Shown in pieces: positions 3,645 through 59,810 of a stretch of 64,000 bases of DNA. The DNA lies in assembly GCA_965637545.1 (NCBI GenBank), contig OZ281495.1, positions 22,692,001-22,756,000 on the forward strand, read 5' to 3'. A model generated the notes under the pieces. It had not been told where the DNA came from, did not search any database, and saw only the letters and a list, made by a program, of their open reading frames with translations. A program made the position numbers and the translations under genes. Every line of letters begins with the position of its first letter. Within the stretch, counting starts at the first letter, position 1. This DNA is from Phallusia mammillata. Its lineage: Eukaryota.

Positions 3645-4834
3645 TTACATTCGACCAAACCCAATTCCTATCTCCTCTTCCTCTCCCTGGGCACGAAGCA
3701 ATGCCATATTAACATCTCTGATATATCTATCTCTTTTATCATCGTTCTCAAAGTCAGTAGCCAATTTAAAGCATTCAAGCGTTTCCTTATAGTATTCAAT
3801 AGCGTTTTCCCTTGAACCCATTTTAAGATATGTTGAACCCAGGTTGTTGCAGAGCGTGCCATAAATCTGGTGTTTTTTGACTTTTTTGTCCCCCATGGTT
3901 CGCCGCATGTAATCAATGGTGTCTAATATGATTCTAATCCGTGCATCATTGTTTGTTTCACATACTTCGATACAATGCGCCACATACCCAGATTTCGCGC
4001 TTTGATAGTAAGGATCAATGTTTTCCAACTCCATAAGCATTTCTTTCATGTAATACATTTTTGGCAGAATGTTGCGTTGGATAAAAGCACCCACACTTTC
4101 ATCCGTTTCAATCATACCAGTTACAGTTTGCCTCATACTGCTAATAATATCCTCAGTTATGCCAAATGTTTCGTACGGGCTTTTATCATCGAAAAATATA
4201 TCTAAACACAATTTGTCAATGACCAGCGCAGAGAAACATTTTTCTTGTTTGCGTAATTTTTTAACCAACCACAAAACAGCTTTGCTTGTTGGATTTGCTG
4301 CGGCGATAATCGATTTCAGTTGCTCCTCAATGGCGTCGTAGTCGTGCTCGGTTGCCATAAGACATACAGCATAGTTGAGGAGTGAACGGGCGTTTCTAAG
4401 ATCCATTCCCATTGTATTTCTTTCATCCAACACACCGAAAGCCTCGTCAAACTGGCCATTGTCCAACAAAGTCGGTACATTATCTGTGTACAAAAATGTT
4501 CGTAGTATATCGCATGCGCGAAAAATTCGCATGCGCAAATTATCGCATGCGCAAAAGCAAGTATGTGCTAAAATTAGAAAGGATCATTGAACTGGTCTGC
4601 TTACCTTGCCAGCAAAATATTTTTGCAAGATCAAATTTTGATGCCTGGTCTTTTTTGTCTCTCTGTCCGTGCGAATCATTTGACTCAGTTACGTTTGCAG
4701 CTTGTTCATCAGTTTCTTGTTGTGACGCCACACTTTCTTCTGCAATTGTTGAACAGTACAAGTAAGCTTTAGTAAAATTACCACATAATACATTGGTGCA
4801 TGCAAAAATATCTTTACTTACCGGAATCACTCAT
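3645..4834 (-). CDS. Gene A1: alpha-helical protein with C-terminal TPR-like repeat and acidic N-terminus (~328 aa, 3 coding exons)
   Basis: Exons 4834-4822 (ATG AGT GAT TCC G|gtaagt), 4739-4605 and 4483-3645, all GT-AG, phase 1 and in frame. C-terminal YGTLCNNLGSTYLKMGSRENAIEYYKETLECFKLATDF is TPR-like. The structure is repeated in paralogue A2. Confidence 0.85.
4510..4553. promoter_or_regulatory. Three tandem TCGCATGCGC motifs (NRF1-like) in intron 2 of gene A1
   Basis: TCGCATGCGC at 4510, 4527 and 4543 (16-17 bp period), close to the NRF1 consensus TGCGCATGCGCA. Confidence 0.35.
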
Positions 4835-5076: not shown

Positions 5077-8000
5077 ATGGAACGTCAAACGATTAATTAC
5101 ATAGTCATGCCCAATGCGTAAGTATTATTTAGTTAAATCCGATCGGAATAGTACCTTAGTTTAGCTGTAAAAAGAATTGTTTGTTAAATGTATTCTTAAC
5201 TGTTTTAATTAAAACACCGTTTTTACTGGGTGCGGGCAGACCTGTCTCGGTCTATCTCTATACATTCAATAAATTGTCGAGGTTGTTAAATGGATCTAAA
5301 ATGCCAAAAATTGAATAAAAAAATTAAATATCTAAGTAGGCTCCCACCGCTATGCGCAAAGTTCAAACATTAGTTGTAAAATGAAGTTTGGTATAACCCA
5401 AAAAAAATACTGAAAAATCGGGTTCTAATTTTCTATCCTATTTTTGTTTTCCTTTATAGGAGCAACGTCGGATTCAATACAAATGCAGGTACGTGTCACT
5501 TTTCTTGAATTCGATAAAAGTGTTCAACCCTATGTCTTGTTTCAGGTGGCGTGACTCAGCTGACCCGATTTAACAAAAAACCCAAAGATAGGACGCGTTT
5601 TACAGGTACAATGAAGTGTTGTCAATATGTATAAACCCCAGTCACGAAGTGGTCCACCGACGTAATGAACCACTAAATCTAGGCCAGGGGTGGGGAACCT
5701 ACTTAGCACTGCGGGCCGCATGAATTGCACAACATTTTCGGGCGGGCCAAATATCTTTTTTATTTTCAAATTCCGTGTAAAAGCACACAAGTGGTTTTAT
5801 ATTTCATCGCTCCAGATTTGATTTTTTTTTGCTGTTACTTGTTTGCAACAAACAAGGCATACAGGTTTATCACTTAATTCGACTAAAATCTGTCCATTCT
5901 TTCTGGAACACCCTAGCTCAATTTAAAACTAACACCACATGGCAAATGATTTGTTACTGCAAGGAGAGACAATCGAGTGACTGTTACGTCACAAATACAG
6001 CAAGTGGTTGAGTGTGGCAATTTTAATAAGTTTGGCGTCAAATGTACAAATGTCGAAGTCTTTTCAAGTACTAAATATTTGTACATAAACGTTTTGTTAT
6101 TGTTTTTTATGCTACGTTTTATGCTGTACTTTAACAAAATAGTGACGCGGTCCACATTAAAAAGGCAAGCGGGCCGCATGCTCCCCACCCCTGATCTAGG
6201 CCATATTTATCGCGTCTATGCCATATACTTGGATATACACAAGTCTTTGCGACAGGTATAATTTAGCCGAACTAAAAAAATACAATCGTTGCATCCAAAT
6301 TTATCTTGTTTTTGGTGCCTTGTCGATATCTTTAGTTGACTGTGAACGCTTTAGGAAAAAAACAAACTTTGTGCAGATATTATTCTTGTTTAAAACTGCT
6401 TATGAGCTAAAAAGTATAAAATACTCTAATTGTTGTTCACACCTACATTTTTGTGTGTTCGCTTTTTACATATTCAATTACAAACTAATTGTTAGGCTGT
6501 TCCCAATTTCCATTACTAAAACGTAAACATAAACAGGACAAAAGCATTACGATTGTGCGCGAACAATTGTATTTTTGACAGTTGTCATTCAATAAAGGCC
6601 ATTGTTTAGCAATGGAGACAGTCGATTCTCAATTCTACTTTGATTTAAACTTATTTAGTGGCACAAAGTGACGTCAAATAAGATTATAGAATAACTTCAA
6701 CCGCTTCGCGGTCCCCCCAAAATTGCCTCACGGACCCCCGAACTACCGCGGACCCTAGTTTGGGAACCGCTCATCTAACCTAACCTATTTATTAACTTGA
6801 TATGTTTTTCTTTTGTTCTATTTGTACAGGACCACAACAAGTTGGCCAGATGTTGCCAATGCTTACAGAACTTCAACCAAATACTGGAAAACTAACCGAA
6901 GGTACTGTTAATTTTTTAAAAATGCATGGTTGCACTTGCTTATTTGTCAGCACATTTTACACTTGCTTCGTAATAATTAGTTCACTTTGTTTTGTGCCTT
7001 ATTGTCGTATCTGGGTGACTGTCTATCCAATAGCAAAAAGAATATGAAAAAACAATTTACATAACCATTGTATTTAGAATCACAACAAATGGGTCTCCTT
7101 AAACTGATCGGAATAGACGCAGAAACATTAGCACAGCCGGAAAATGGTATGTTTGTACATAGAACAAAGTAATCTAAACTAATGTTTTGCAATAAATTTT
7201 AAAGGTAATTAACTAATAAACCAACTTAAGTTACGATTTTTTAACTTAATGTATTTCTTTTTTATTCTATTCATACAGGAGCACTTCAAGTTGGTAACCC
7301 GTTGTTGTCAATGCAAGGGGTTCAAGCAAATACTAAACAACTAACTGAAGGTGATAATTATCTAAAACATGCATAGTTATTCTTATTTTATCAGTATATT
7401 TCACACCTTCCTTTGATTAAAAAAATAATTTATTAAATAATGGTCTTTTAATATTATGTTACTATGAGAAAATGTGTTATGCATAGCAGTAATAATTATG
7501 TAACCTAAAAAAATATAAAATAAAAACACTGTTTCAGGAAGTGACATATTCTCATATTTTAAAATATTACAGAAGCTGGAAAGAAAAATGTGCTAAAAGC
7601 CATGCAAAAACTTGGTATGTAGCTTGGAGTAATGCTGGGCCATTATTAAGTTATAAAGTAATACTAAAAACAAACGATTTTTTTCCTTCATGTCTTAATT
7701 TTATTTTTGTTAAACATCAATGCGTCACAAAGCGTTATTAAAATATTAACGAAACCACGTTTTGTACGACAGAACAAACTGCTCCTAAAGGAGGATTCTA
7801 CTGGAAAACTAGTTTGGAATGGATGATCTCCCATGAAGGTAGGTTTGTGTCAAGCATGAATTTAGTCCACCAAAAAGTTGATTTCCATAGTTTTTTGGAC
7901 GTCATAATAAACATGCCAAAACAAATGTAACTTAACGTTTACATGCACTAAAATATTTTTTCAAACAGTTTTTACCATGTTGAGCACACAACCCTGACTG

Positions 8001-9202
8001 TCGGGGTTTACGAAATTATAAATAGTGGTGTTCACCACTGTTTAATTCAAAAAAACTCTTTAAGTATTTTATGTGACACTACTGCTTCAAAAAAGGTGTG
8101 GATAAATAACCGGGATAGATGTTAATGTGGCGCTAAAGTATAAAACAACATAAAATTCTTCTTCTTTTCTTTACATATCAAAGTGTGAGAGGAGATTTTA
8201 ACATGTTGGTAAACGAGCACTATGTTCGCCCACTACCCCTTAATATCCGAATACCATTTTGTCCACAGCAAACGTCTAATTCGGATCATGTGAAGATACA
8301 AATTTTGTTTAAAAATGTACTGTACTTAAATGTATTTAAAACTTTTTCTTTCTGCAGAGAGAATAGATGCCATACACAGTGACGGTGATCTTTACCAGGC
8401 ATATGGTGTCCATGAAAAAATACTCCAATTCGATCCTTCTGTGCGAGACATTAGATTTCAAATGTACTATTGTCTCACTTTGATGCTTACAAACCGCAAA
8501 GAACGGGCCAACGAAGTATTTGATAAAATTGTGTCTTTGGTCCAAAACATGGGCGAAACGTTTCAAACCGTTTTGCATCTGGCAGAAAAAACTGTAAAAA
8601 TAGAAGGCAAAACGTTTGAGGCAATCTTACTATGCCTTATCGCAGCCAAAATTGCCGATATGAGTACTTTTACTGTTCTTGATACTGCCGAAAAACTGAA
8701 ATGCATGACTGTTCTACGAGAAGCTACAGGAAAAATAACCGACAGTATAAAGAAAGTAAAACCGTTTCTGAGTCGATATTGTATTACAGCAATTCGTCCG
8801 CTGTTTGAACGCATCCAACAAAAACCTCCATCTTCAGTTATAAACAAAAATCTTGTTCAAATCAGAATTGCCACATTCCACTGCATGGAAATCCTGCTAT
8901 TGTACGCTGATGACGACGAAGGAAGAGCACAGTTGCTTGAGCATGCGTTAGAGTTTTTAAGAGAAACCTACGGCAATAAAGTTGCCAAAAAAAGGTGGTA
9001 CGGCATTTTTAACAACAACTTGGGTGCAACATACCTTACCTTGTCGCGCCCAGACAAAGCAGCTGAAGCGTTGTCTCGTACAATCGAGGTTTTCCAGCAA
9101 GCAACTGACTTTGACAACAAGATTGAAAGAGAAGACAGTGTATTTAAGGCAAAGCAGATGCTAAAACAACCGTCGCTTGGGGGATTGGGGGTTCATGATT
9201 AG
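5077..9202 (+). CDS. Gene B1: micro-exon-array N-terminus plus helical/TPR-like domain (~417 aa, 8 coding exons)
   Basis: Exons 5077-5117, 5460-5488, 5546-5605, 6830-6901, 7078-7146, 7279-7350, 7773-7838 and 8358-9202, all GT-AG and in frame (1254 nt). C-terminal YGIFNNNLGATYLTLSRPDKAAEALSRTIEVFQQATDF. Confidence 0.8.
5685..6193 (+). mobile_element. hAT-type MITE in an intron of B1
   Basis: TIRs CAGGGGTGGGGA / TCCCCACCCCTG and TSD ATCTAGGC on both sides. Confidence 0.9.
6530..6772 (+). mobile_element. Right-end fragment of the 1681-2101 MITE family
   Basis: Near-identical to ~1858-2100 and ends GTTTGGGAACCGCT. Left end missing. Confidence 0.75.
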
Positions 9203-9357
9203 GTGAACAGTAGAGGTCTGAACCAGATACGTTATAGAAGTAAACCGGAACATTAGTTTACAGCTTGTATATTATTATCTCGTATTGCGCTTTGCGTCCA
9301 TGTTGCTTTATCTTTAGCGTCTGTTTGAATTTCTGTTTTTTGCATTATTGAAATCCT

Positions 9358-9752
9358 TGTTACGAGTAAACCCGGCCAGTTTTATTTCTCTTTTGTGCTT
9401 TTTGTTTTTCTTGCGTGGATGTGTATTAGTTTTGTTGTATATATTTCGCTTGACATCACTTGTACTCGACTTATAATAAAATGTGCCAAGTATCCATTTT
9501 CTCCGAAATCGTAGCTATCGCTGCCTCATAGCAAACAAACAGCTTCTTTAGCGCCACCGGTTGTCTTTTTTTCTTGTTTTTCTTCCAGTAGATGGCAATA
9601 TCGCACAAAACACAAACATAAAACATGTCGAAATATACAGCCATTGGGCAGGAACCTGGCCGAATGGTCTTGCGCGCCTGAACCATACACAGACATAAAA
9701 AACCGGAGCGGGATTCGTCCCCGGGAGTGTCCTGGGTTCGAACCCCGTGAAA
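9358..9752. mobile_element. Dispersed repeat, solo-LTR-like (related fragments at 13129-13300 and ~40960-41085)
   Basis: Begins TGTTACG and ends CGTGA(A/C)A. The shared segment GGTTCGAACCCAGGAC(A/T)CTCCCGGGGACGAATCCCG is also at 13129. No clear TSD. Confidence 0.4.
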
Positions 9753-10199
9753 AAAAATATACATACAGCCATAAACAACCTGTTCTGAGTTCGTACTCGA
9801 ACCTACTGGGTTTGAATATGAAAAATTGGATAGGTATAGCTCACTACATGTAGTACGATATTGATTAGAGAAAAATAGTTGACATCACGCGTTCGTCTTG
9901 TCCTGCATAACTTTGTGTAAAGACAAATTAGTCATATTGTTTGTAATTTGTATTCGCTGCTTCGAATGAAGCCGTTGTTGCATGAGTAATTTGATTTTCC
10001 AACTGTATTTAAATGAGTTTGGCATAGATACATGAGAAAAAAATACTTCGCTAATCGTACTGCGCCAAATTTTCGAGATTATACTTTTGGGTCCAAGGCC
10101 TAATTTCGGACATGCATTAGCGACGACTTAACAGGAGGAAAACAACAGATGTGTAGTAAAAAAACAAACAGTGTTTTTTTTATTTTACAGCGAACAGTT

Positions 10200-12400
10200 C
10201 ATAATTTTAATATCACAGGACCATGCAAAATTTTACAAACATTTTTTGATGTGATACTGGTACTGTCTTTAAGAATAAATACAGTGTAATAAAAAAAAAT
10301 GTTGTTTACTGTGTACCATGTTTACTGGGTGAACAATTAGCTAAAAAAAATACAATTAAATATAGATTATTATATTTCCCCATGGTATTGGCATTAGGGT
10401 GTTTACAGGAAGTGTGTAAAATAAGTGTTTGCAACGGACGCTTTGTTGCCGGTTTCGTTTGCGTAGTTTTTGTAATTACCACTAACTTGATGTACTTGTT
10501 GATTTAGCATTTTGAGACTGATTTGACAGTCTCTGACTTGGTGTTAGAGTAGAACATTTGACTACACCAGTTCCTTTAAAAACGTTTGTTTATCTAACAT
10601 TTGACTTTTCCAGCATCGCCTTATTTCTTAGCTCAGACTATCAGACTTTTCGGGTCGGTTTTGGGTTCAGGTTTACGTTTGAAACAATTAGTTCAATTTG
10701 ACCTGACTTCCCACTCGGTTACTTTTGTTTCGAGTTTCACTTTGGTAAATTTAATATTCGAGCCCAATTCGGGCTTTAAAAAACATCTGTACCGAGACGA
10801 ATTGGGCTTTGTACTTTGTAGGGTTCCTCCCATATTTTAGGCTTGCTTACATCCCTGTGGGCTGTTTACAATAACAAATACTGTATGATGGTACAAAAAT
10901 GTTGTGGTTGTTTGCTGTTTATCGTGTCGATTGTCACATTACCCATAACAAAAAACGTGTGCGAAGAGACCAAGTCTGTGCTTGTATTTTGTAAACATTC
11001 ACTGAGGAAGCCCCGCGCAAAACAATTATCTAAAATTTTACAATTAAATATAGATTATTATATTTCCCCGTGGTATTGGCATTAAGATGTTTACAGGAAG
11101 TAGGTATAATTAATGTTTGCACACGGACTCTTTGTTATCGGTTTTGATTGCGCAGTTTTTTTATTACCACGAAACCTATTTACTTGTTAGTTTAGAAGCA
11201 AAGATAATTAGATTAAAACACTTTGGTAATACAATAGAATATTCGTTTGCAACCATTGCTTTTAAAAACGTTTATTTTTTCAACACTTGACTTTTCCAGC
11301 ATGGCGTAACCGACTATAGCAGACGTTCATGTGCCAGACTTTTCTGCTGGTCGGGTCTGGATTCGGGTCAGCGTTTAAACCAATGGGTTCATTTGGATCA
11401 GACTTTTTACTTGGTCAACTTTGTATCGAGTTTTATCGTGGTACACTCAAGCCTAATTCGGGTCTTGAAAAAAGTCGGGTCCAAGGCTCCCAGCAGAATT
11501 TCGGGTTTGTACTTTGTAGGGTTCCGCCCATAATTAGGGCCCACTTGCATCACCGTTTTTTTTTGTTGTATTAGCGATAGCTTAAAATGAGCTGTCATGG
11601 AAGACAACAAAACAACAGTGTCGTGAAAACCAAAAAGTTAATGAAACAAGGCAAAACGGTTTATACATTTAATATCACACGACCCTTACAAACATTTTTT
11701 GTTGTTGTGACACTGGTGCTGTTTTTAGGCATAAATAGTGTATGATGATACAGATACAGTGTGATGGCTATTTACTGTTCACCTTGTTAACTGACACATA
11801 ACACAAAAAACGTGCAAAGAGACCAAATCTGTAGCCTACATGGGCGCCAGCAGAAAATTTTGCAATCGGGATCAGATTTTGATATACCTGCACAGGGGTG
11901 CATTGCAATATGTAATTGTGTACATTTAGGCAAAACATATACAGAATAATTCCGTTGCATAAAACTTGATTCACCTTTCGATGTAAAAACAATTCCCACG
12001 AAGTCACACGTCTATCACGTGTACCATTTTGTAAAACTTTAGGGATTATAAAAACAACGGCAGAAACGAAAATGAGACAGATATCGGTAAAATCGCTTAG
12101 ACATTCCTCCATTTCTTAGAATATGAAACTTTTTCAAACGTCAGTCTTTTCGACATAATTTGTTAAAATTAAGATACTTTAAATTCCAAGGGGTACAAGT
12201 GCCCCCTCTTGCCCCTACGTGGCGGCGCACATAAATCTGTGCTTGTCATTGTAAAGAGGCAGAGGAAACCCCGCGGAAAACAAATATTAAACGTTTTGTT
12301 ATTAATTACTAATGATTATTTTTTCCCCTGTCATTGGGGTGTTTACAGGAAATACGTAAATACCCTTGCATTTTGCACTAAGACTATTTGCAAACCACTG
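10200..12400. repeat. Three degenerate tandem copies of a ~650-800 bp non-coding unit
   Basis: A block resembling GATTATTATATTTCCC...GTGTTTACAGGAAG recurs at ~10360, ~11050 and ~12315. TTTCGGG...GTACTTTGTAGGGTTC occurs at ~10800 and ~11500. Confidence 0.55.
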
Positions 12401-13106
12401 CAGTTTTCCTGTGTTCGAGACTGCAGGTCTGCCGGTACACGTCACCTAAACCTAATTTGAATCTTTATCCTGATCGAGCCCAAAAGGCTAACCATAAGAA
12501 TATGCTTCCTCATTCTGACCACGGGCGAATTATTTTGGGGTATTGTCTGCATGTAATGTTTTCCGTGTTTAAACTGTTTTGCAGGTTTCTTTTCTCAAAC
12601 TTTTAAGTCATTGATACATATTTAGAAGATTGATAGGCCCACATACTTACCAAGGTTTTATGTGACCAGACAGCTATGTTACAAAATATGCCATAAGCTA
12701 TAGCTCTCGCTCAATGCATTCCTTGTATAAAACTGGGCTGTATAACCCTCCACAGTTTTATATCATCGAATGTTTTAATTGACTTGTGCGTAGCATCGCA
12801 TGACTAACGTGGTGAAATCAACTTACATTTGCAGGGAGGCTAAACGGAACCTTTTAGGCAAAAGCAAAATGAATCATTGACTTGTCTGCGCAACTGAAAA
12901 GTGGGAAAGCGCTCTTGATTGGTTGCTACTAAAAGGCGCAGCAATTAAGACGTTTTAAAATACCAGCAAACATTTAGATTTTAACCTACCAATCGCCCAA
13001 CAAATGTTTTCATTCTTATTCTCGTTTAACCTATTATAAAATTACCTCTTAATAACAGAAACAAATGTAACAAAAAAACAAATCACAGTGTAATGAAGTG
13101 CACACA

Positions 13107-13300
13107 TTATTATTATTATTATTATTATTGTCACGGGTTTCGAACCCAGGACTCTCCCGGGGACGAATCCCGATCAGGTTTTTTATGTCTGTATGGGTCA
13201 TGCGCGCTGGACCATTCGGCCAAGTTCATGGCCGCATTACAAGATTTTTTGATTAATCACGGCCACCAGTTCGTATACTTTACGACAACATATATTCGCC
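13107..13300. repeat. (ATT)n microsatellite abutting a fragment of the 9358-9752 repeat family
   Basis: ATT repeats at 13107-13129 followed by TGTCACGGGTTTCGAACCCAGGACTCTCCCGGGG. Confidence 0.55.
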
Positions 13301-14465
13301 TTCGGGGTCGCAGAATGGTTAAAAAATAATAATTGTTAATTTGACATTTCAAATTAACACATTCGAGAACAATATTGTTTTGCGTGTATATGGGTTTTAG
13401 TCTTACTAAAAATGTAAAAGCTAAAAAATTATAGTTTAATTTTGTTTTTATAAGCTATTGATCAACAGTTTTAACGTAACTACAAATGCCATGCCACATG
13501 AGCTCATAAAAAAACGAAGGAAGTCGACTGATCTATACATTTTTAATTTGGCCGCTTTCACTTTGAGTTAAGTTCCTTCATGCTTGGTGAAAGAAAACAT
13601 AGAGAAACTATTGCATTAAAATATATAAAAATGCAGTAATGTTAATAAAAAAACGCATTTTTAGTATCGTTATGATTTCGACAAAAATAAATTATTCTCA
13701 AACCGCACTATGGCGGCAGAAATTGTCTGCACCTGTTAATGTATTTCAAACCAGGTAAACTTACAAGCTAACTTTTACTAAAAAAACTAATATCCCACTA
13801 CTGTCAACAATCGCTTTAACCTTAGGTAAATTATTTACATAATACAAGGCAGCATTAGCCCAGCTTCCTAATTCGTTAAGACAGGCTGGAGTGAGAACCT
13901 AACAGCAGCAAGCTTGGCCTGTCTGTATTTTTTTGGCGCTTGCTACTTTTACTTTTGGAATTAGTTGATCAATATTTATAAAGTGAGATTTTATTTTTAT
14001 AGCACAGTTATACAAATATTGTGCTACACCTGTGACATTAAACAGCTTAGGACACAAATATTTCAGGATTTCAGCACTCCCGGCAGCCACTTTATTGCAG
14101 GTTGCAACACCAGAAAATATTATATAAAAAAGTTCCGATTGGTTAGAAGAGATAACATGACAAACAATATCCGTATCTATTTGCAGTCTTCCTGTTTTTT
14201 TGAAACTGCGTAGGTTTAGGCATAAGAACATGTTTTCTAGTTGTAGTGTAACCCATTTGGCTAATTCAAATTAGATTTCCGGTTAAATGCAAGGACGCAT
14301 GGGTTATCCAATTAGAGTTTTGATTTAATAAACGAACACGCTACATATTATGGGTTTCAAGAACAATATAAGAAAAGCATCATAAATACATTTCTACAGA
14401 TTTAATTAATATTGGAAAACTACAACTTACGACATCAGAGAAATACACAATCTGTAAAAGATAAC

Positions 14466-15794
14466 TTAATTTCGTCCAAAGCCAATTCCAACCTCTGGTT
14501 CGAGACCCTGAGCCCGGCGGATGGACATCATGGCATCATTAATGTATTTCATTTTTTTAGTTTCGTCTTGAAAGTCAGTGGCCGATTGAAAGCATTCTAA
14601 GGCTTTCTCGAAAAAATTTTGGGCGTCATTTCTTAAACCCATTTTAAGATACGTTGTCGCGAGGTTACTGCAAATCGTGCCATACATTTGATGTTTGTTT
14701 GCTTCTTCATCCCCTATGGTTTCTTGCATATAATTAACTGTGTCCAAAATTAATTTAATCCGTGCCCCAGTATTTGGTTCACAAACTTCAATGCAGTGCG
14801 TTAAATAGGCAGATTTCACACAATGATAGTAGGGGTCAATATTTTGTAACTGCAGAAGCTTTTGTTTCAAGTTGTATATTTTTGGGAGAATATGTTGGGC
14901 AAACATCTCCATATTTTCATCCCTTTCAACTAAAGCCGTTAAGGTTTGCCTCATACTGGCAATGAAATTCTCAATTATCCCAAAAGTTTCGTATGAGCGA
15001 TCGGCATCGAAATAATAATCTGCACATATTTCGTCAATGAGTAACGCAGAAAACCATTCGTTTTGTTTGCGAAGTTTTTTAACCAACCACAAAACCGATT
15101 TGCTAGTTGGCTTTACAGTAGCGATAACCGATTTAAGCGGCTCCTTAACCGCATTGTAGTCGTGCCCAGTTGACATAAGACATGCACCATAGTTTAGGAT
15201 TGAACGCGCGTTTCTCATCTCCCTTCCCATTCGTTTTCTTTGGTCCAACACACCGAAAGCCTCGTCAAACCGTCCTTCGGCAAAATATGTCGATGTGCTA
15301 TCTGTAAGCAAATACAAACCTTTTTTTACCTTTCGTAACAAACTTTTTTTTGCAGTTACCTTAAAACTGCCAAAAACACAAAATCATAGATTTACGATTT
15401 TTTTAAAATTTGGCATTTTCTTCAGGCTTCTTTGACATGGCCTTGTTAGCTTTAAAACGCAAAAAAGGACCAAATACACATTTTACCCTAATATATACTA
15501 ATCTTAAACCAACACAAAGAATATGAAAAAAGGAGTAAACCATACAGAACCTTGCTTTAAAAATATTTTTGCAAGGTCGAATTTGGATGCTTGATTTTCT
15601 GTGTGATTTTCCTCCTCATACGAATCATCAGAGTCACTTGCAACATGTTCATCAATTTCGTGCTGTTCGGTTGTCGATGTTGACAATTGCGGCATAGTAT
15701 CATCTGTGATCATTAAGAAACACAAGGATAATATTATATTCACGTGCTTATATTGTTCCAAATCTGACGATCTTTACTTACCAGAATCACCCAT
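14466..15794 (-). CDS. Gene A2: paralogue of A1 (~333 aa, 3 coding exons)
   Basis: Exons 15794-15782 (ATG GGT GAT TCT G|gtaagt), 15703-15551 and 15301-14466. QASKFDLAKIF and the C-terminal E(I/V)GIGFGR are shared with A1. Confidence 0.85.
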
Positions 15795-16034
15795 TTCTAA
15801 GTCAACGATTTAAAGAGTTACTAAAACACATTGAGCCAAACTGTATGGCAAGGGCTCCTTATATTAACGCAGAACCTTTTTTCCGGTTTTTTTTTTCAGA
15901 GCCTTTTTTTAAAGCTAAACACACACGCAACCCAGCTACGACAAAACAGCCTGCACCATTCAGTTTTAGCTTAAACGCTGGAAGTACGTAACTCGAAGGC
16001 AGAGTGAGATTGAACTCAAACCCCAGACAATATA
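15795..16034. promoter_or_regulatory. Putative bidirectional promoter of A2/B2
   Basis: 240 bp between the divergent start codons. It shares the exact 13-mer AACCTTTTTTCCG with the A1/B1 spacer. Confidence 0.6.
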
Positions 16035-19000
16035 ATGCATGCTCAGGAAAAGAATATCAACATTTCTGAAGTGTAAGTAGCATCTGATATCTGCATTAGG
16101 TGTGTTGCTCTATAGCAGTGGTTCTTAACCAGGGGTACACGCACCCCTAAGGGGTACGAGAACTATTTTCTAGGGGGTGCGGTGATGCTGAATCATTAAG
16201 GTTATTTATAGGTCTATTCTATATATAAATACAAAAACCCAAAGGGGTACAGCAAGGAAAAAAGGTTAAGAACTGCTCTATAGTTTTTACAGGCTATGAT
16301 GTCTGTGAGGTAACTCTGTTTTGGCTTCAATTTATTATTTTGGCAGAATAAAATAACCGTAAAAATTAATAAGAAAAGCTAAATGTAGGTTTAACTTTTA
16401 CATAAATTTAACGTTTTAATGCATAACGTATAATTTGTCAAATATATACTGTTTTGTTTACAGAGGCAATGTTTACATCAATGCAGGTAATTTACAGTCT
16501 TAGTAAAAATACCTGACATGTTTTTGCAACTAAAGCCTGTTTGATGTTTTTTCAGGTGGTGGACATACGCATGCTCATTCTCATACAGGTATAATATACT
16601 ATTTGTTTTACGTCAGAATGTTTAAAACTTCGGTACAGGGTTAGCTTTTCGCGCCCCGCGTGCACCATGTGAGCACTCAATACAGCGTTACATAAACGAA
16701 ATGAATTACTGAACTCCTAAATTAAATAACTGTGGCCTTAAAGTCAAATTTTAGTTTCTTGCATTTTTTGCCGAAAGTGAGTAATGATGCCAGGAGCGAT
16801 ACCCATTGTGTTGTAGATCTTTTCGATAAAATTGTATAAATTTGCAAAATAATTTTTTTAAACATGTATGTCTTAAAGTATTACATTTAACAATTATTTT
16901 GTAGTCAACACAAGAAGTGTATCCCAAACGTCGCGAAAATTCCAGTCAAATTGTAAGTAATCTGTCACAACAATATCAGCCTCTATTTGGTCAGTGCGAA
17001 CTTAAGATGTAGGAGCGAACCATTTTAAACCATAAATAAGAAGTAAAATGGGCAGCTTATTGTTAGGTAATATCTATCTTAAATTAGCAAAAATAAAACT
17101 TCTGATTTTTAAGGACAGGGGTTGCCTAATTACGAGTTCTTATTTCAAAGATATTCGCACAAACACTTTTGCGATTAGTTTAACCTAGTTTCGCAGCATT
17201 TAAACATATAGAAACGATTCAAAGGCAGCTTGTTACAATACAACACGACAGAAATAAAAATATTATTTGTATGCGCAACTGCCTTCTTCTGTTACTTGTG
17301 ATGGCACAAAGGGTGTAGGGACAGTAGGGAGCCTCATATATTCCATACAAATAATCTTACAATTTGTCAATTGCACTAGCTTACAGGGGATTGTGAAAAA
17401 TGCTATTTTTGGTATTTCACATGTATTTTATAGGCATGCGTGTTTACAAGCAGTTAAACGATTGTAAAATTGTCTCGTTGTTAATTTGTTTTTAATACTT
17501 TGGATTTGCGGGTTTAATTTGGGCTAGTTTTAAAAAGCAGAGTTGCGGTGAAAGCTGAGCAGATCTTTCGCCTTAAATATTGTTTTGTGTATAAAGCCGG
17601 CGTAATATACATATTTGATTCGAATGCATACGGTTTACCACTTCGATTTTCAATCAGTACACACTTGCATGTATATCAAAGAAACTCTCAGAATTTGATA
17701 AGTTATTGCAAAAACAATACATTACGTGTGCATACATCCATTTTAAAACACCCAATTAGCAAAAGAGTATTTTTTTTCTAAATGGCCCGCCTGCAAAAAA
17801 ACCTAAACGGATTAGCTAAAGAGTTTGCCGACAAGGTTAGACTTGGTCAGCAACAAAACGGAGGTAAAGCTTTAGGAACGGCAGTTGGCGCGAAACTACA
17901 GTTGTTTAACTTTTCTTCTCTACCATCAATTTAAATGCAAAACAATTGTAGCAAATTGTCACTCGGTGTTTATTCCAAACTATGTGGGGCTTGGCAAAAT
18001 TTCTTTATTTGTTTTAAGAAAGGCTAAATACGTAAAGTTGCGTGTTTTTCCTAAAATATTTAAATTAAAATGTATTTAGCTGGGCAAAGAGGAGGATTGG
18101 CGCACATACTGGAAGGTGCTGAAAACCTGAACCGAGATGGTGGGAAATATAGTCATACTTGAACTTACAGTGTAATCATCTAACAAAATGTGATTCAACT
18201 AAACCCGTCCTTGCAACATTACAAATGTTGTTATGTATCTTTATCTTCGATCTCCGCACACAAAAACTGCGCCTATTTATGTCATAAACAACAAGAAATT
18301 AATTCCTTTTTAAAGTTTAATACGTTGATATTCCTGCAAACTCATTACACAATTACTTAAAATCATTACCAACTAAACAACGATAATTAAAGTATTAGCA
18401 TTTGAAAAAAGCTTTTATCTTTTAAATACGAAAAAGGATATACGTCAACAAATCATAGTTAGGATAATGCGTAACAAACATCTTCAAATTGTTCCTAAAT
18501 TATTAGAGATTTATGTTTTTCCACAGCCAAAAAATATATCGCTAATAACTTACAGTTGCGTGGTTCAACTAAAGCTTTTGTACATGATTTATATATTTAG
18601 CACAACAAGGAAGAGGGTTAATGCAAATGTTCCGGGGATCAGTTGAAAACCTGACCGGAGGACGTAAGTAGAAAATAATTTTTGTACTAAACATCACTTT
18701 TCCCTTCCACCAAAAAGTGTACAAAGTAAAACTAAATTTTCCTGACTAATCGTAAAACGGGCTTGGCTTCTTGTAGTATTCGATATGAAACAAAGTTATT
18801 GTAAAAGCTACGATTAGCGGTGCGTTGTAAGTTACAACAAAACATACCTATTTTGCATGGTGGTCCGTATCTCTCAAAAATCGTAAAAGGGTGATATTTA
18901 ATTACGTTTAAAAAAATCGATGCCGGAAAAAAGTAAAAAAAGAAGCACTGAAAATATATAAACATTACAACCTCTCGCAAACGACCCACGTTCTGTTGCC

Positions 19001-22000
19001 GCCCTTCTGCCGTATTGTGTTCTGCAGACCTGCTTCAAGTGTCCCTTTTTAACCGGTTTAAACAAGCACAAATTCACAAAAATCTTGAGTCATAAAAGTT
19101 TGTAAAACATACTTGACAACAACAATGTATTTATGATTAACTTTCATGAAATGTTTAATTAATTACAAACATTAAATAAATTTCTTAAAAACTTGAAATT
19201 ATGTTTTTTAAGTTGTCAACTTAACCTGACAGTAACTGCAAATGAATTTATAAATGTCAAAATTTATTGCAGGAGTAGGTAATCACTGAGCTACAGCCTA
19301 TTTACCGGGGATTGCAAAAAAATACAGTATGTGGTCATTGGGGTTGTAACGTATACTTCAGTGCTCCAGGTGGGCACAGGCGTCCACTCTGGTACTTCAA
19401 ATTAGATTCAAAAACGCGTCTGCCAGGTCCCAACTACAGGCTTCTACCTACTAACACTCCACACTAGGTTCCAAAACAGTTTATTTGTAAACAAAGCCCT
19501 TGCTAGGTTCAATTAGCAGGATGCAGTTACTTCTATGGGATTACGATGGTAAAACTGGCGGACGGCTTTCTAAAGGAAATATTTTGGGATAAGCAGCATA
19601 CAACAATATAACACTCTTACCGAAACGTCTGGACCAGGACTTTGAAACAGTTATTTGTTGACAAGCACTCAAGTCAAACTGCAAGTAACGAAGTACAATT
19701 TAAACCAGGCATATTGTCACAACAAAAGGTAAACAATGCAAGACAATGGTTATTTGCATAATGTTGACAAAGATACACAAGTAAACAAAACAACACTTTC
19801 CAAAACAAATTGGTCACGAATTTCTGGCAGACTTTATGTGCACAGCAATAAGAAACAGGTTTACGTATGATTTAACAAGCAATTTACTTAATTTTCCTAA
19901 AAAACAATGTAGTTTCCTAGACACATGAATTGAACCACCAACGTTTTCAGCAAACTTGTCGAACACAAAGCGTAAAACTGTCCACATGACGGGGCTATTT
20001 ATACTGAAATTTACAATTTTACGGAGACGGTAGACAAAACAGTAATTTGCGATGTAACAGGGGTTGACATGACTACTATTTCGCTGGCTCTAGGCAGACT
20101 TGGGCCAACAAAAAATATTGCAAAAATAGAACATTTGGAGATAAACTTTTAGGAAAGGAAGTCAGTTCTACAGTTGTTTTAACATCTGTTATCTACTTTT
20201 AAAATAAATGCATAGCAATTATTTCGAAATGTCACTCAGTGTTTATTCCAAACTATATGGTGCCTTGGGAAAAAAAAATCTTTATTTGTCTTTAAAATGG
20301 CTAAATACGTAAAGTTGCGTGTTTTTCCTAAATGATTTAAATTAAAATGTATTTAGCTTGGCAAAGAGGAGGATTGGCGCAAATACTGGAAGGTGCTGAA
20401 AACCTGAACGGAGATGGTAGGAAATATATTCACACTTGAACTTACGTAATTTTATGTTTAAATCAAACCACCAACAAGGTACCTGATATAGGCTTGAAAG
20501 GTAATAAGGTTCACTGCTCATACTATCTGACATACAAGAAAAAATGATTCCGTTTTGATGTAATTTAAAAGTATATGCGTACTTACAAAGATTTAAAAAG
20601 TTTTGGACCTGCAAGTTTTGTTTAATTGTTGTTACGACCAATCCAAATTTAAGTGTTTGTTTTCAAATTTTTACAAAGAAATTTAAAATTGGCAACAAAA
20701 ATGGAAAGGTTGTGTTTTCGAAATGAAACCTTATTAAGATATATTACTAATGGGGTCATTTTAAGTTAAATGAATCATTATTCCATCTGGAAAAAAGAAT
20801 TACTTCAAATAAATTTTATTGCGGTTTCGTTTGACAGCCATTGCTTGCAGTAAGGCCCACAAATTTTTGTCATTTTCTAAAGAGTCTTTTACAGTAAAGA
20901 CGACTGATAAGCAAAAAAATGCTTTTTTGTACCTTTAGATTAACAGTTATATGTCTTAGTTAACAGTGTATGTGTTATATAAGGTAATAACGTTGTTTGT
21001 TCGAACTTTATTTTGACCGAAGCAAAGTATAAATGAGTCTGATTGGTTTCAAGGCTTTTTTTCAAAAAAAAAGAAAATGTTAGGCCTTATTAACTGCATA
21101 GGAATGTATTAAGGCTCAAGTTTTAATATTTTTAAAAATCTGTCATACGACAAAAACAAAACTTACAAACGTCCACAAAATCTAATGGATGTTTAATATC
21201 AATCTCTGTAACCATCAAAAAATCTTTATTTGTCTTTAAAATGGCTAAATACGTAAAGTTTCGTGTTTTTCCTAAATGATTTAAATTAAAATGTATTTAG
21301 CTGGGCAAAGAGGAGGATTGGCGCAAACACTGGAAGGTGCTGAAAACCTGAACGGAGATGGTAGGAAATATATTCATACTTGAACTTACGTAATTTTATG
21401 TTTAAATCAAACCACCAACAAGGTACCTGAAGGTATAGGCTCGAAAGGTAATAAGGCCCACTGCCATTTTACATACAAGAAAAAATGATTCCGTTTTTGT
21501 GTAATTTAAAAGTATATATGTACTTACAAAGATTTAAAAAGTTTTGGACCTGCAAGTTTTGTGTAATTGTTGTTACGACCAATCCAAATTTAAGTGTTTG
21601 TTTTCAAATTTTTACTAAGAAATTTAAAATTGGCAAAAAAATGGAAAGGTTGTGTTTTCGAAATGAAACCTTATTAAGATATATTACTAATGGGGTCATT
21701 TTAAGTTAAATGAATCATTATTCCATCTGGAAAAAAGAATTGCTTCAAATACATTTTACTGCAAATTTGAATTTTCTTTTACAGTAAAGACGACTGATAA
21801 GCAAAAAAAATGCTTCAGATTTTTTGTACCTTCAGATTAACAGTTATATGTCTTAGTTAACAGTGTATGTGTTATATAAGGTAATAACGTTGCTTGTTTG
21901 AACTTTATTTTGACCGAAGCAAAGTATAAATGAGTCTGCTTGGTTTCTAGGCATTTTTTTCAAAAAAAACATGAAAATGTTAGGCCTTATTAACTGCATA

Positions 22001-25000
22001 GGTATGTATTAAGGCCCAAGTTTTAATAATTTTAAAAAACTGTCATAGCACAAAAACAAAACTTGCAAACGTCCCCAAAATCTAATGGATGTTTTATATC
22101 AATCTCTGTAACCATCATGTCAAATTTGGCCTAAAACTCGTAAATGGTTTTTCAGTTACACGCAATATTTTTTTAAGGAGTTTTGTTACCTGCAGGTACC
22201 TACTTACATAACAACAGGAACGCTTTTTTCCTGAGCCATTATGCGACAAAGAGGAACTGTGTATTACAAAAAATGTGTTACAAAAGTAACTGTAGGAAAT
22301 GATATCACTACACGTTAAAATATTCATATTCCATCATTGTGATACAATATTATAATGTTGCAATAGTCCGAAGTTAGGCTGATTATAAAGCAGGAACTTT
22401 AGAGTGCGATCAGTTCTTAGTGTGTTGGTTTGGCGCAGAGGTGGGCAACCTATGGCGCATGCACCAAACGTGGCGTATTGTATCTTTGTGATGATCCTAA
22501 ACAATAAAGTATGGCTACTTGTTATTTTTAATTAATTTCTTCTTTGGCACATTCTATTTAGGAATGTCTTAAATAGATCACCACATTTTCGCCAGATTGC
22601 TAATGAGACTTAGTCCAGTCAAAGTCTGTGTTAAACACAGGTTGGGATTTGTGGTGCTTTTGTGGTGATTACCAAATAGGCTAAACCGATTTTTTTTGTT
22701 ATATTTTTGCCTCTTGGTGCTATTTTACTGATAAGTATGTTGGTGTTGTTGTTCTAGAATCTAGATAGTTCGAAAAGTGGCCCGTGACAAATTTTGAGTC
22801 AATGTCTTCTAATTTGAAGCATGTATAGCCAATTTTTGCAAACAATATATAAATATATATATATATATATATACAATAGTCATAACAAATCAGTTATACT
22901 AAAGCACCGCCAGAAATGAAAGCAACGCAACAAAATGTAAATAAACCGCCAGTTTTAATTAAAGTATTAGCATTTAAAACACGAAATCTTTAAAACACGA
23001 AAAAAGATACGTCCACAAACGTTAAGAATCGTTCATATTTGGGATAATGCGTAATAAACATCTTTAATTTGTTCCTAAATTATCAGAGATTTATGTTTTT
23101 CCATAGCCATACAGTTGTGTGGTTCAACTTTTAAACATGATTTTGTATATTTAGCACAACAAGGAGGAGGTTTCATGCAAATGTTCCGAGAATCAGTTGA
23201 AAACCTGACCAGTCAACGTAAGTGAAAGAAAATCTTTTTAAAAATCTTGTTTATAAGTTAAGGGATTCACGGGCGTAAATCCCGAAGCGGGGGTAGGACG
23301 TGTTCCCTCGAAAAAGATGTTTGAGCAGTGCAGCTATCGATGGAGCACTTTGCCATTTTATTTGCGTAATTTGAAATATTTTTTTCGTCCAAGAAATGGG
23401 CGACGATAGATGAAAAATGCGATTGTTTTCTTTAGAGAACTGGTATACCAACACACTAAACTAGCATTGTTAAGTCCGTGTAACGCCCCCAAAGTCGATA
23501 ACCAGGTTTTTCTGGCAGGATTAGAGTTCAAACTTGAGGTTCAATAGAACGGGCTTGATTTGGGCCTGCCACTCGATTTTACTTTCCCACATTTTCGACG
23601 ATTTTATGCCTAAAAAACGGATTCGAGCTGGGTTTGGGGGTTGGACTTTTGGGTCCAGGTCTCGATTTTAGGCCCATTTACTGCTTTGTCGGCTTGTGTG
23701 ATTTTATAGTTGTCTTCTTGGCTAAACAAATCTGTTTAATTCCATCCCAGATCACAAAACACAAACCCAGGCAATCGTTTGCGCACAATCTTTAAGTCCG
23801 GTCACTGGCACAACTAACTGCCCATCAAGTGTTTTTGCGATGATATACTTTTGTAAGGAGTTAATATACTTGGTAAATACGCTTTTGTCTTTTTTTAGAA
23901 AAGCAGTACGTTTAGGCTTGATAGTTCCACTTCTCTGCAATACTAAGTGCTAGGCGAGCCTTTTTATGTATTTTATTTTTATTTTGATGTCGTGTCCTTG
24001 AGAACCTTTATTTAACAATAAAAAACAATTTGACAAATAGACGCTTTTATACACACAATGTATTTAGTGGGCCATGGCGGAGGATTGCTTCAAAGTCTTT
24101 TAAGTGCAGAAAACATTTCAGAAGAAGATGGTGAGTGTTAAATAAATCCCAAAATTTGTTACTTATTTAACATTTGTTTTCAGTGTAGTTTTAGAGTTTT
24201 GAACACAGTTGCTGTTGAGTACGACTCTTATTTAACATCTTTTTGTAGTAATAGTTTTAAAATTACTCTTACCCAACAACCACTTAACATATTGTATGAT
24301 AGTATGGCGTGTTTTGTGCAACTCTGAGAAGCATATTGCGGCTCATTGACAGGCTCAACAGCCGTGCACCGGAAGTGTGCAAATGGCACAATTGACAAAT
24401 ATAACCGAACACAAGGCCGCCTTGTGTAGTTTTTGGAGTTTCGTAGATAGTAAAGGGTTTGTTAAGAATAGGGACTTAATTGCGCCGATCTTAAATCCAT
24501 ATAAACATATCGTTAGGCACATAAACTTTAGGGTAAACGTGGGTGCCACAACTTAAAAGAAAACTTGATATATAGATATATACTATTTTATGTAAACTAT
24601 TGAGAGTACCTAAAGTAATTCACTTTAAGTGGGGTAACATCCGCCTAAATACCAAAGCAACCTGATTGATTTTGACTATAAAAGAAAAACTGTTGGCTTG
24701 ACAAAAGTTTTTTAAAACATAACATGTGTTTACAGAAAAGGCTAAAACTGTATCTTTTTCTGCATTCCTGACACTTTAATTTTACTGAAACATCGCAAAT
24801 GACTCAAATAGGCATCTTTTTCACGACAGGCTCTTCGTCAAACAGTACATTTTCTTGGAAAACCGATTTGGACTGGATGATGTCGCATGAGGGTAAGTTT
24901 AAAGTTTCCGAAAACCTTGCAAACGTTCTTGACACGATACGCTCTCAAGTTACTGTCGTATCGATAAAAGTAATTCGCTTAGCAACATTTTTACGTAAAC

Positions 25001-26149
25001 GTGTACCGACGAAAAACTGTAACAATTACTTAATGAAATGAATTTGAAAAATAAAACTCAAGGTCGGTGACGGAAATATGTAAAATACAGGCATGACTAG
25101 AACATATACGAACAAACGTTTTAGAAGACTTCGTCATCTTGACTTATTGCCCAAATTACGTCAGTTAAGTTAAAAGTTAAGTTTAAAGTAGTTAGCGGTT
25201 GGATAAGGCGTCCGCCGATAGATGTACCGGGGTTCGATTCGGCTGATCCAATTGATAACAGAAGTCGAATATACCTATACAATTATTTTGTGCAGAAACT
25301 ATAGAATCCATGCACAGCAACGAGAAACTCTACGAGGCCTATGGCTTCCATGAAAAAATACATCAGTTCGATCCTGACGAGCGAGACATTAGGTTTCAGA
25401 TGCACTACTGCCTCAGTTTGATGCTTACAAACCGCGAAGTACAGGCCAATAAAGCCTTCGATAAAATTGTGTCTTCAATCCGAAAGATGGGCGAAACGTT
25501 TCAAAGTGTTTTGCGCTTGGCGGAAAAGACAGTAAAAATAGAAGGCAAAAGTTTTGAAGCAATCTTGCTATGCCTTATTGCCGCCAAAATTTCCGACATG
25601 AGCATTTTTACTGTTTCCGACTCTGCTGATAAATCAAAATGCATGAACGTTCTGCGGACAGCTGCCGGAAAAATTAGTGACAACAATAAAAAAGCCAAAC
25701 CATTTTTGAGAAGATATTGTCTTAAGGGTGCCCGTCCGCTGCTTGAACACATTCAACAAACCGCTCCGGATAACATGTACAAGAATCTTATCAGTCTGCG
25801 AATTGCCACATTCCATTGCATGGAAATTCTGCTGCTGTATGCTGATGAAGACGAGGAAAGAGCGCTGTTGCTTGAAAGGGCATTGCAGTTTTTAAGAGAA
25901 GCATATGGCACTGAGGTTCTCAAAAAAAAGTGGTACGGCACGTTTTCCAGCAACTTGGGTGCCACATACCTCTCACTCTCGCGACCGGACAAAACAGCTG
26001 AAGCATTGTCTCGGGCAATCGAAGTGTTCAAGCAAGCAACCGACTTTGACGACGAAATGGAAAGGCAACAAGATATCAGAAGCGCAGAGCAAATGTTATA
26101 TCAACCTGGACTTGGGAGCTTAGGGGTTGCCAAACAAACCCATCGTTAG
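16035..26149 (+). CDS. Gene B2: paralogue of B1 with expanded micro-exon array (~459-475 aa)
   Basis: Exons 16035-16072, 16464-16486, 16556-16588, (16905-16952 uncertain), 18080-18139, 18601-18663, 20357-20416, 21301-21360, 23155-23217, 24068-24130, 24830-24892 and 25296-26149. All GT-AG; the internal exons are phase 1-1. WKTDLDWMMSHE matches B1 WKTSLEWMISHE. Confidence 0.75.
16116..16275 (+). mobile_element. Short hAT-type MITE in intron 1 of B2
   Basis: CAGTGGTTCTTAACC ... GGTTAAGAACTG with TSD CTCTATAG on both sides. Confidence 0.85.
20275..22116. repeat. Recent ~944-bp tandem duplication carrying a 60-nt exon of B2
   Basis: 20275-21217 and 21218-22116 are highly similar, with exon copies at 20357 and 21301. 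Part of the unit is a dispersed repeat also found at ~59395-59810. Confidence 0.85.
25188..25245 (+). other. tRNA-derived remnant (SINE head or tRNA pseudogene fragment)
   Basis: A-box-like TAGCGGTTGGATAAGGCG and B-box GGTTCGATTC. No intact cloverleaf. Confidence 0.3.
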
Positions 26150-43962: not shown

Positions 43963-44679
43963 CTAGTTAAGAAATTTACGTAGAAATTCCCGGGTTGGGT
44001 CGCTTGATCGTGTGTCAAAACACTGGTTTTGTTCAGAGTACCGTTCTCTGACTGGAATTATATCTCTCCAAGTCGGTGAAGATGAAGAACTATTAGCTCG
44101 AGTCAGAAGCTCAATTCTCTGGCTTCTTTCTGGCACACAATCTACAGGCTCTCTGTACTCCAAATAACTTGCTACGTCTTCAAAAACCAGTACTGCTCTC
44201 ATAAAAAACCACCCACCGAATTGTGGATGAATGCAGACGCCATAAATATTCTCTTCCTCTTCCCAAGGATCGTTTTCCACATCATCACGCTGATAGTAAT
44301 ATGTTGCACCAGCAACATGTGCGGCACGTTGTACAAGAACCTTATATTGTTTGTTGTCATCCTTCTCATCAGCATAGATGATGTGCACATTGTTCATTCC
44401 AAGCCTTTCGACTGCGGTGGTCACATGAAATTCAGTGCAAGAGTCGATAGGTTTCCTGATGATTTCATCGTTATCAATATTTTCACGCAGGTACGGCAAA
44501 AAGCAATTTTCGAAAAACGAAGGAATTGACAGAATAAGTGCACATGTTGTATCATCCCTGTAAGGTAACTTGAACTGTTCATCAACAAGTTCGTTGTACC
44601 AACCAACTTGAAACAAATAAGTTTCTAATCCACGTGGTTCCAAATATTCTTTCAGATTTGATAGTATTTCATCAGACAT
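43963..44679 (-). CDS. MMACHC: MMACHC/CblC-like cobalamin-processing protein, copy 1 (238 aa, intronless)
   Basis: Motifs FQVGWYNEL, PIDSC, AAHVAGATYYYQR, DPW, GVCIHPQFGGWFFMRAV, PVDCVP and RERYSE match the CblC family. Confidence 0.88.
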   Translation of the reverse strand: MSDEILSNLKEYLEPRGLETYLFQVGWYNELVDEQFKLPYRDDTTCALILSIPSFFENCFLPYLRENIDNDEIIRKPIDSCTEFHVTTAVERLGMNNVHIIYADEKDDNKQYKVLVQRAAHVAGATYYYQRDDVENDPWEEEENIYGVCIHPQFGGWFFMRAVLVFEDVASYLEYREPVDCVPERSQRIELLTRANSSSSSPTWRDIIPVRERYSEQNQCFDTRSSDPTREFLRKFLN

Positions 44680-53680: not shown

Positions 53681-53729
53681 AATCGCGCGGGAGCAGGGGC
53701 AGAAGACGAACGGGAGTTGACAGGCTTGT

Positions 53730-59394: not shown

Positions 59395-59810
59395 AGGTAC
59401 CTGAAGGTATATGGGCCCGAAAGGTAATAAGGCACACTGCTCATATTTTTTATATAACTTACAAGAAAAAATGCTGCTGTTTTAAAGTAATTTTAAAATA
59501 TATACGTACTTACAATGATTTACAAAGTTTTGTACCTGCAAGTTATGTGTAATTGATATTATGACAAAACCAAATTTAGAAGTGTTTGTTTTCAACTTTT
59601 TATAAAAAAATTTTTAAAAATGAAGAGGTTGTGTTATCGAAATGAAATCTCATTATGATGTATTAGTGATGGGGTCATTTTAGTTTAATCGAAGCATTAT
59701 CCCATCAACAGAATTATTTCAAATAAATTTTATTACGGTGTTGTTTGTCAGCCATTGCTTGCAATAAGGCCCAACGATTTTTGTCATTTTCTAAAGTGTA
59801 TTTTATAGTG
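59395..59810 (+). repeat. Dispersed repeat shared with introns of B2 (~20475-20900, ~21420-21760)
   Basis: AGGTACCTGA...AAGGTAATAAGG...ACAAGAAAAAATG...GGGGTCATTTTA blocks occur in the same order. Confidence 0.7.

Follow-up and report, generated by a model that had tools for sequence, protein, structure and literature searches.

Duplicating phase-1 exons ahead of a TPR-like solenoid in two paralogous genes of the ascidian Phallusia mammillata

The presence of rows of very small exons ahead of a single large, domain-coding exon in two paralogous genes of the ascidian Phallusia mammillata raises the question of how such rows arose and how their exons are used. The genes, B1 (5077-9202, plus strand) and B2 (16035-26149, plus strand), lie in a stretch of 64,000 nucleotides (nt) from assembly GCA_965637545.1 (contig OZ281495.1, positions 22,692,001 to 22,756,000 of the forward strand), referred to here as the window and numbered from its first letter. 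The open reading frames listed for this 64-kb window include four of one kind and of about 280 amino acids (aa), two on the plus strand belonging to the B genes (8330-9202 and 25310-26149) and two on the minus strand belonging to related genes called A (3645-4538 and 14466-15341). A preliminary description of the same DNA had proposed that the small exons generate combinatorial isoforms and alleles of variable exon number, in the manner of the micro-exon genes (MEGs) of schistosomes. We find it reasonably probable that the exon array is instead a constitutive "evolutionary accordion" linker, that is, a duplicating phase-1 spacer placed before a tetratricopeptide repeat (TPR) solenoid. We regard the locus as a lineage-specific case of the duplication of symmetric exons, in a TPR family that is uncharacterised and restricted to ascidians.

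All internal exons of B1 and B2 (23-72 nt) are bordered by an AG acceptor and a GT donor, and in both genes the first intron is in phase 2 and every later one in phase 1 (Table 1). When joined, the exons of B1 give an open frame of 431 codons ending at a stop, and the 12 exons of B2, with all 22 splice sites intact, give one of 475 codons. Frame continuity across joined exons was checked with local scripts; searches and folding used single exons or the protein P0001 described below. The small exons listed in the preliminary description lie where it had placed them, with the sizes and phases given, and the four peptides quoted from them are correct; a 42-nt exon of B1 (7573-7614) had been overlooked. 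As had also been claimed, symmetric phase 1-1 exons supply modules of about 20 aa to the N-terminus of the B proteins, on the evidence of borders and open frames and, for B1, of the P0001 junctions. A profile of these modules run against the six-frame translation of all 64 kb matched the nine predicted module exons and nothing else.

The splicing of B1 has independent support. A word search with the TPR exon of B2 returned a sole protein, P0001, recorded as "uncharacterized protein LOC100176565 [Phallusia mammillata]" (382 aa; UniProt A0A6F9DFT3; CAB3261007.1), which joins six B1 exons at the predicted borders. The junctions of exons 4 to 9 are crossed without gaps, the 42-nt exon included, and the one indel, of a single residue, lies inside exon 6. 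Over this range the exon complement of P0001 and B1 is identical, every exon from 6830 on being included. P0001 begins at an internal Met of exon 4 and leaves exons 1-3 uncovered; this 5′ truncation, together with a divergence of 5% from the assembly, suggests that it is an independent transcript-derived sequence. The modules diverge faster than the TPR exon, with 87 of 100 residues identical in the former (87%) and 267 of 281 in the latter (95%; p = 0.012). The exon-6 module of P0001 (residues 41-66, ..PLLPMLTGVQAN..) is one residue longer than that of the window (7279-7350, ..PLLSMQGVQAN..) and nearer to the exon-4 module (6830-6901), a difference which may reflect gene conversion between modules or an allelic indel.

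The module exons of B2 are probably spliced in as well, to judge from the intact frame and splice sites, the homologous exons, and the conservation of exon versus intron. Identity to the copies is 95-100% over exon 18080 and its acceptor but 69-84% over the intron flanks (Fisher p 9e-4 and 2e-4). B2 also has an intact TPR exon, which shares 69-70% identity with B1 and P0001.

In B2 an ancestral two-exon unit (the exons at 18080 and 18601) has been duplicated, 17896-18209 resembling 20168-20486 and 18453-18686 resembling 23033-23240, and the type-a part of the unit is present in a third copy (21216-21430). The units of the tandem duplication (Table 1) are 89% identical overall and 98% identical around the exon. 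B1 contains an older and more diverged event than that of B2, in which a 449-bp unit carrying exons 4 and 5 was duplicated to give exons 6 and 7. In both genes, paralogous exons of the same phase are accompanied by homologous intron flanks, as expected of a tandem symmetric-exon array, and growth by exon duplication, which the preliminary description had put forward, is borne out by these flanks and by the 944-bp tandem. Judged by sequence similarity, the B1 and B2 arrays expanded independently: phmmer searches with each B1 module, and a profile made from B2 only, detected exons of their own gene only. The modules of the two genes thus fail to detect each other, and what had been seen as one Gln/Gly/Leu module family is a resemblance of pattern only.

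The interspersed repeat associated with the B2 tandem has copies at 20473-20904, 21417-21758 and 59391-59818, about 80% identical to one another, and in genomic runs its contigs within the tandem unit reach 30-180 times the single-copy level. It may have promoted the tandem duplication. Exact contigs specific to one copy, with a depth near the single-copy level, exist for each tandem unit in the genomic runs X1 and X2, two runs that agree with the window without differences and are probably the data behind the assembly; the tandem is therefore not an obvious assembly error. Allelic copy number was also sought in DNA contigs: joints that skip about 900 bp occur at homologous positions of both units and, since they fall inside the high-copy repeat, are uninterpretable.

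The two tandem exons, 20357 and 21301, might be mutually exclusive, with one used per transcript, as is common for tandem exons of equal length. Both are 60 nt long and in one phase, they are identical at 58 of 60 positions and have identical splice-site contexts, and a relative from Styela has isoforms with a swapped N-terminal segment. Joint inclusion is, however, also in frame (phase 1-1, multiple of three), so that nothing enforces exclusivity, and we consider such a mode of use quite improbable.

What the arrays encode was approached through searches and structure prediction. The module region matches no Pfam family. No relatives of the modules besides P0001 were found among 5.8 billion clustered proteins (210-668 aa range), the modules are absent from all but P0001 among 160 family proteins fetched, and a search of the ESM Atlas with the module region gave weak, generic helical-repeat leads only. 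An AlphaFold model of P0001 built with a 49-row family alignment, which superseded a poor single-sequence model with a predicted local distance difference test score (pLDDT) of 42, assigns residues 1-89 a pLDDT of 29-62, with scattered helices, and residues 93-370 values above 90 in nearly every 10-residue block. According to this model the module segment is probably disordered. Residues 91-110 have a pLDDT of 85-88, and a helix (93-109) starts in the last small exon and continues into the last exon; the last small exon contributes in this way to helix 1 of the TPR domain and is therefore probably obligatory.

According to the linker explanation, a B protein would have a peptide-docking TPR solenoid of about 280 aa, of the LGN/Pins and kinesin light chain type, preceded by a variable linker and, at the N-terminus, by a brief conserved motif. 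The linker exons begin and end in phase 1, a geometry common to the A genes and to the intron ahead of the TPR exon. With this geometry, unequal recombination between intron repeats could add or remove units of one or two exons while the frame is kept. Such events would have occurred independently in B1 (exons 4 and 5 giving 6 and 7; 449 bp) and in B2 (exons 5 and 6 giving 7/8 and 9, followed by the ~944-bp tandem). The outcome would be a fast-evolving, probably disordered spacer with repeated short Leu-rich and acidic motifs. Its exons would mostly be included constitutively, and the modules would act as a spacer or as multivalent docking motifs for a TPR groove, either their own or that of the A partner.

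Several observations weigh against this explanation. Of the two checks suggested for the modules in the preliminary description, structure prediction gave the low pLDDT values cited above, and in the test of helical hydrophobic moment most modules did not beat shuffles and were not significantly amphipathic; values below 0.05 were obtained for two segments only, the module exon 18601 (0.041) and exon 4 of B2, which is not a module. No docking of the modules onto the TPR domain was seen, and the idea of a motif ligand is without direct support. The record of P0001 does not show whether a cDNA or a gene model is its source. In B2, exon 18601 and its copy 23155 (54/63) are conserved no better than the intron flank, and the few differences among the type-a exon copies are all non-synonymous (by eye), so that peptide constraint looks weak. 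No B2-like protein was found on record in the word search with the B2 TPR exon. Two small runs labelled as guessed RNA (X3 and X4, tissue unknown), compared with 20300-26200, yielded only repeat fragments of 20-45 nt and no B2 transcript or junction.

These properties of B2, with copy differences that are mostly non-synonymous and a high-copy interspersed repeat within the tandem unit, would also agree with a situation in which B2, or some of its recently duplicated exons, is silent or decaying and the array, not made into protein, is a by-product of repeat-driven duplication in large, transposon-rich introns. We think this unlikely. AG/GT borders are kept in 12 of 12 exons, no stop interrupts the 475-codon frame, the TPR exon shows no disruption and has the similarity to B1 and P0001 given above, and the conservation of exon 18080 and its copies clearly exceeds that of the flanks. 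The RNA-like runs, moreover, are few, small and of unknown tissue, which makes the absence of B2 from them weak evidence.

The linker explanation also has to be weighed against that of a splice cassette, in which subsets of exons would be skipped in many combinations, alleles would differ in exon number, and the result would be an isoform repertoire like that of MEGs. The geometry speaks for it: all internal exons after the first intron are phase 1-1, and 65 of 66 skip junctions stay open. The modules outpace the TPR domain in divergence between P0001 and B1, and relatives in Styela (LOC120332495) and Clavelina (LOC143459256) have N-terminal isoforms in RefSeq, which say nothing direct about the B locus. 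However, P0001 includes every exon it covers and its exon number equals that of B1, no junctions occur in X3 or X4, the defining features of MEGs are absent, and the last small exon lies inside the folded domain. The earlier statement that any subset can be skipped in frame holds for the reading frame at nearly every junction, but this last exon is probably obligatory. We regard a cassette of this kind as improbable. A 6-nt exon, GAGTAG (19273-19278), had been suggested as a further member of the array; it is at chance level, the pattern AG-N6-GT occurring nine times within the intron concerned and YAG-N6-GTR 45 times on the plus strand of the window.

The comparison with MEGs merits closer consideration. 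In PMC4350168 (citing DeMarco 2010), MEGs are described as having a coding region composed mostly of very small symmetrical exons, always a signal peptide, and variants produced by exon skipping, and as being apparently restricted to flatworms. Relative to that description, B1 and B2 also have rows of small symmetric exons, a small-exon part that evolves faster, and duplication associated with transposable elements. In contrast, internal small exons account for 31.6% of the coding sequence in B1 and for 37.5% in B2, and are mostly of 60-72 nt. No hydrophobic core is seen in the first 40 aa, where the best 12-residue Kyte-Doolittle mean is 0.69 for B1 and 0.48 for B2 (hydropathy only, no dedicated predictor). 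Alternative splicing, demonstrated in MEGs as described there, is conceivable for the B genes, for which the RNA-like runs gave no transcript and the single public product, P0001, keeps all exons it covers. The protein nearest to the B genes comes from an ascidian (Phallusia mammillata), not a flatworm. With no signal peptide seen and 32-38% of coding sequence in small exons, the likeness to schistosome MEGs is superficial; symmetry alone is in common. Nor do the exons correspond to the usual definition of microexons, for which cut-offs of ≤51 nt or ≤30 nt are used (PMC12064062, PMC8042270): 5 of the 17 internal small exons of B1 and B2 are of ≤51 nt (23, 29, 33, 42 and 48) and 2 of the 17 of ≤30 nt.

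A better comparison is with the general rule that modular evolution draws on phase 1-1 exons within disordered regions (PMC3632108). Like the arrays described there, the B exons have phase 1-1 and lengths divisible by three, include paralogues with homologous flanks, and encode a low-confidence, repetitive segment beside a folded domain. Unlike them, the B modules are without detectable relatives, and the two genes independently built arrays from two-exon units, arrays which cannot be aligned with each other.

The domain that follows the linker is an all-helical TPR solenoid according to the confident model and to its Foldseek matches, the best of which are the TPR domains of LGN/Pins and kinesin light chain (E 2e-4 to 1e-2, template modelling (TM) score 0.3-0.5). 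The best Pfam hits, TPR_12, TPR_1 and TPR_8, reach 17-25 bits, under the gathering cut-offs of 25.7-30.1, and the 50 best structural matches include no IFIT, which gives no indication of an IFIT-like fold. In LGN/Pins and kinesin light chain, regulation involves short linear motifs that fill the TPR groove. The B solenoid differs from them in its low identity (13-16%; TM ~0.4) and lacks GoLoco or heptad regions.

An exhaustive profile search gave 1828 matches, many of which are generic multi-TPR proteins aligned at profile positions ~190-270 only. The true family was taken as the single-stretch, near-full-length matches to the ~280-position profile, in proteins of ~200-430 aa (E 1e-146 to 1e-13). 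Members with a species name are all from ascidians (Ciona intestinalis, Clavelina lepadiformis, Styela clava and Phallusia); many others are unnamed metagenome and Logan contigs. They are called "uncharacterized" or "unnamed" throughout, bar two generic "Tetratricopeptide repeat protein" labels. The Clavelina accessions are consecutive, which points to a tandem cluster there too. Literature searches found no paper that mentions the Ciona locus name LOC100176565 and nothing relevant on ascidian TPR expansions or Phallusia micro-exons.

The N-termini of these relatives vary widely. The N-terminal motif of the B genes (5460-5560, ..NVGFNTNAGG..; 16464-16570, ..NVYINAGGG..) resembles ..MQINPQGGGVT.. 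in Ciona and ..NVYHINIA.. and ..IGQINIP.. in Styela (relatives P0012, P0039, P0050, P0068, P0086, P0155 and P0157). Clavelina N-termini have one Leu-rich helix and then an acidic run, reminiscent of exon 10 of B2, a likeness without statistical support. In RefSeq, isoforms X1 and X2 of Styela LOC120332495 swap an N-terminal segment of ~20 aa, which is that of the conserved motif, and those of Clavelina LOC143459256 differ by the first 57 aa.

A more elaborate proposal is that a signalling family confined to ascidians uses the phase-1 array as a regulated cassette. Splicing, by skipping or by mutually exclusive use, and allelic copy number would then set the number of short docking motifs between a conserved, possibly RHIM-like N-terminal oligomerisation motif and the peptide-binding TPR solenoid. 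We consider this very doubtful. If it were true, the family would provide adaptors that are adjustable and varied, possibly acting together with the A partner encoded head-to-head. If the exons were used alternatively, the locus would represent a non-flatworm, non-secreted counterpart of MEG diversification; otherwise it reflects ordinary exon-duplication evolution. It illustrates cleanly, in nature, how phase symmetry of the exons permits a linker in a protein to grow and shrink, with two sister genes that carry different module arrays before one conserved domain, each derived by duplication of a two-exon unit. It also draws attention to a TPR family in which all members with a species name come from ascidians and which is characterised by tandem expansion, head-to-head pairs and a conserved N-terminal motif.

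Table 1. Predicted exons of B1 and B2, the A genes and the B2 tandem duplication (positions in the window)
Feature	Position	Strand	Description
B1 exon 1	5077..5117	+	ATG, 41 nt, phase-2 donor GTAAGT; predicted, outside P0001 coverage; yields open 431-codon frame
B1 exon 2	5460..5488	+	29 nt; conserved N-terminal motif ..NVGFNTNAG, common to B2 exon 2
B1 exon 3	5546..5605	+	60 nt, phase 1-1, basic segment; frame open between AG and GT borders; outside P0001 coverage
B1 exon 4	6830..6901	+	72 nt, 1-1, module; 15/17 aligned residues match P0001; paralogue of exon 6
B1 exon 5	7078..7146	+	69 nt, 1-1, module; 21/23 residues match P0001, junctions exact
B1 exon 6	7279..7350	+	72 nt, 1-1, module; exon 4 duplicate, 449-bp period; one residue more in P0001
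B1 exon 7	7573..7614	+	42 nt, 1-1; 12/14 residues match P0001; absent from the preliminary description
B1 exon 8	7773..7838	+	66 nt, 1-1; conserved ..FYWKTSLEWMISHE; begins TPR helix 1
B1 last exon	8358..9202	+	~845 nt; ~280-aa TPR-like solenoid and stop; 95% identical to P0001
B2 exon 1	16035..16072	+	ATG, 38 nt, phase-2 donor; predicted; yields open 475-codon frame
B2 exon 2	16464..16486	+	23 nt; motif ..GNVYINAG; homologous to B1 exon 2
B2 exon 3	16556..16588	+	33 nt, 1-1, His-rich
B2 exon 4	16905..16952	+	48 nt, 1-1; final T gives TAA stop if joined directly to last exon
B2 exon 5	18080..18139	+	60 nt, 1-1, type-a module; copies 57/60 identical, acceptor 20/20, flanks 69-84%
B2 exon 6	18601..18663	+	63 nt, 1-1, type-b module
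B2 exon 7	20357..20416	+	60 nt, 1-1, type-a module; tandem copy 1
B2 exon 8	21301..21360	+	60 nt, 1-1, type-a module; tandem copy 2; copy-specific exact DNA contig, ~single-copy depth
B2 exon 9	23155..23217	+	63 nt, 1-1, type-b module; exon 6 duplicate, 54/63 identical
B2 exon 10	24068..24130	+	63 nt, 1-1, diverged type-a module, acidic tail; 72% identical to type-a reference copy
B2 exon 11	24830..24892	+	63 nt, 1-1; ..FSWKTDLDWMMSHE; B1 exon 8 homologue, helix-1 start by homology
B2 last exon	25296..26149	+	TPR-like solenoid and stop; 70% identical to P0001
Tandem duplication	20273..22117	+	units 20273-21217 and 21217-22117 (~944/900 bp); per unit, a single 60-nt exon and a portion of the interspersed repeat
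A1	3645..4834	-	head-to-head with B1; exons of 13, 135 and 839 nt; phase-1 introns; TPR domain family of B genes
A2	14466..15794	-	head-to-head with B2; exons of 13, 153 and 836 nt; phase-1 introns

Each A gene stands head-to-head with a B gene, so that the locus can be described as an A/B pair duplicated in tandem. The domain common to A2 and B2 is 27% identical (E 3e-13), and the A genes share a geometry in which a first exon of 13 nt is followed by a middle exon of 135 or 153 nt in phase 1-1, with a phase-1 intron preceding the TPR exon. The start codons of each pair are ~240 bp apart (A1 4834 and B1 5077; A2 15794 and B2 16035), which points to a bidirectional promoter common to A and B genes; the two proteins are possibly partners. 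All four proteins close with Gly/hydrophobic tails (3648-3680 and 14469-14500, ..GIGFGRM and ..GIGFGRN in A; 9170-9199 and 26110-26146, ..LGGLGV.. and ..LGSLGV.. in B), in which the Gly positions are invariant across the A/B alignment.

The window is AT-rich animal DNA, with a G+C content of 30-40% over most of its length. Short elements resembling miniature inverted-repeat transposable elements, with inverted ends (..GGGGAACC..GCGGGCCGC..), are spread through introns and intergenic DNA (5683-5740/6150-6200, 1680-1700/2080-2100, 6700-6770, 16120-16270 and 22440-22480). A sequence that resembles a tRNA or a short interspersed nuclear element (..GGGTTCGAACCC..) is found in opposite orientations at 9700-9750 and 13130-13200, flanking the intergenic DNA (9.7-13.2 kb) that separates B1 from A2. 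Further along, two intronless MMACHC-like genes (43963-44679 and 56408-57181) enclose a GC-rich (0.52) retrotransposon remnant on the minus strand (52026-54578) with gag-like and integrase/reverse transcriptase-like open frames.

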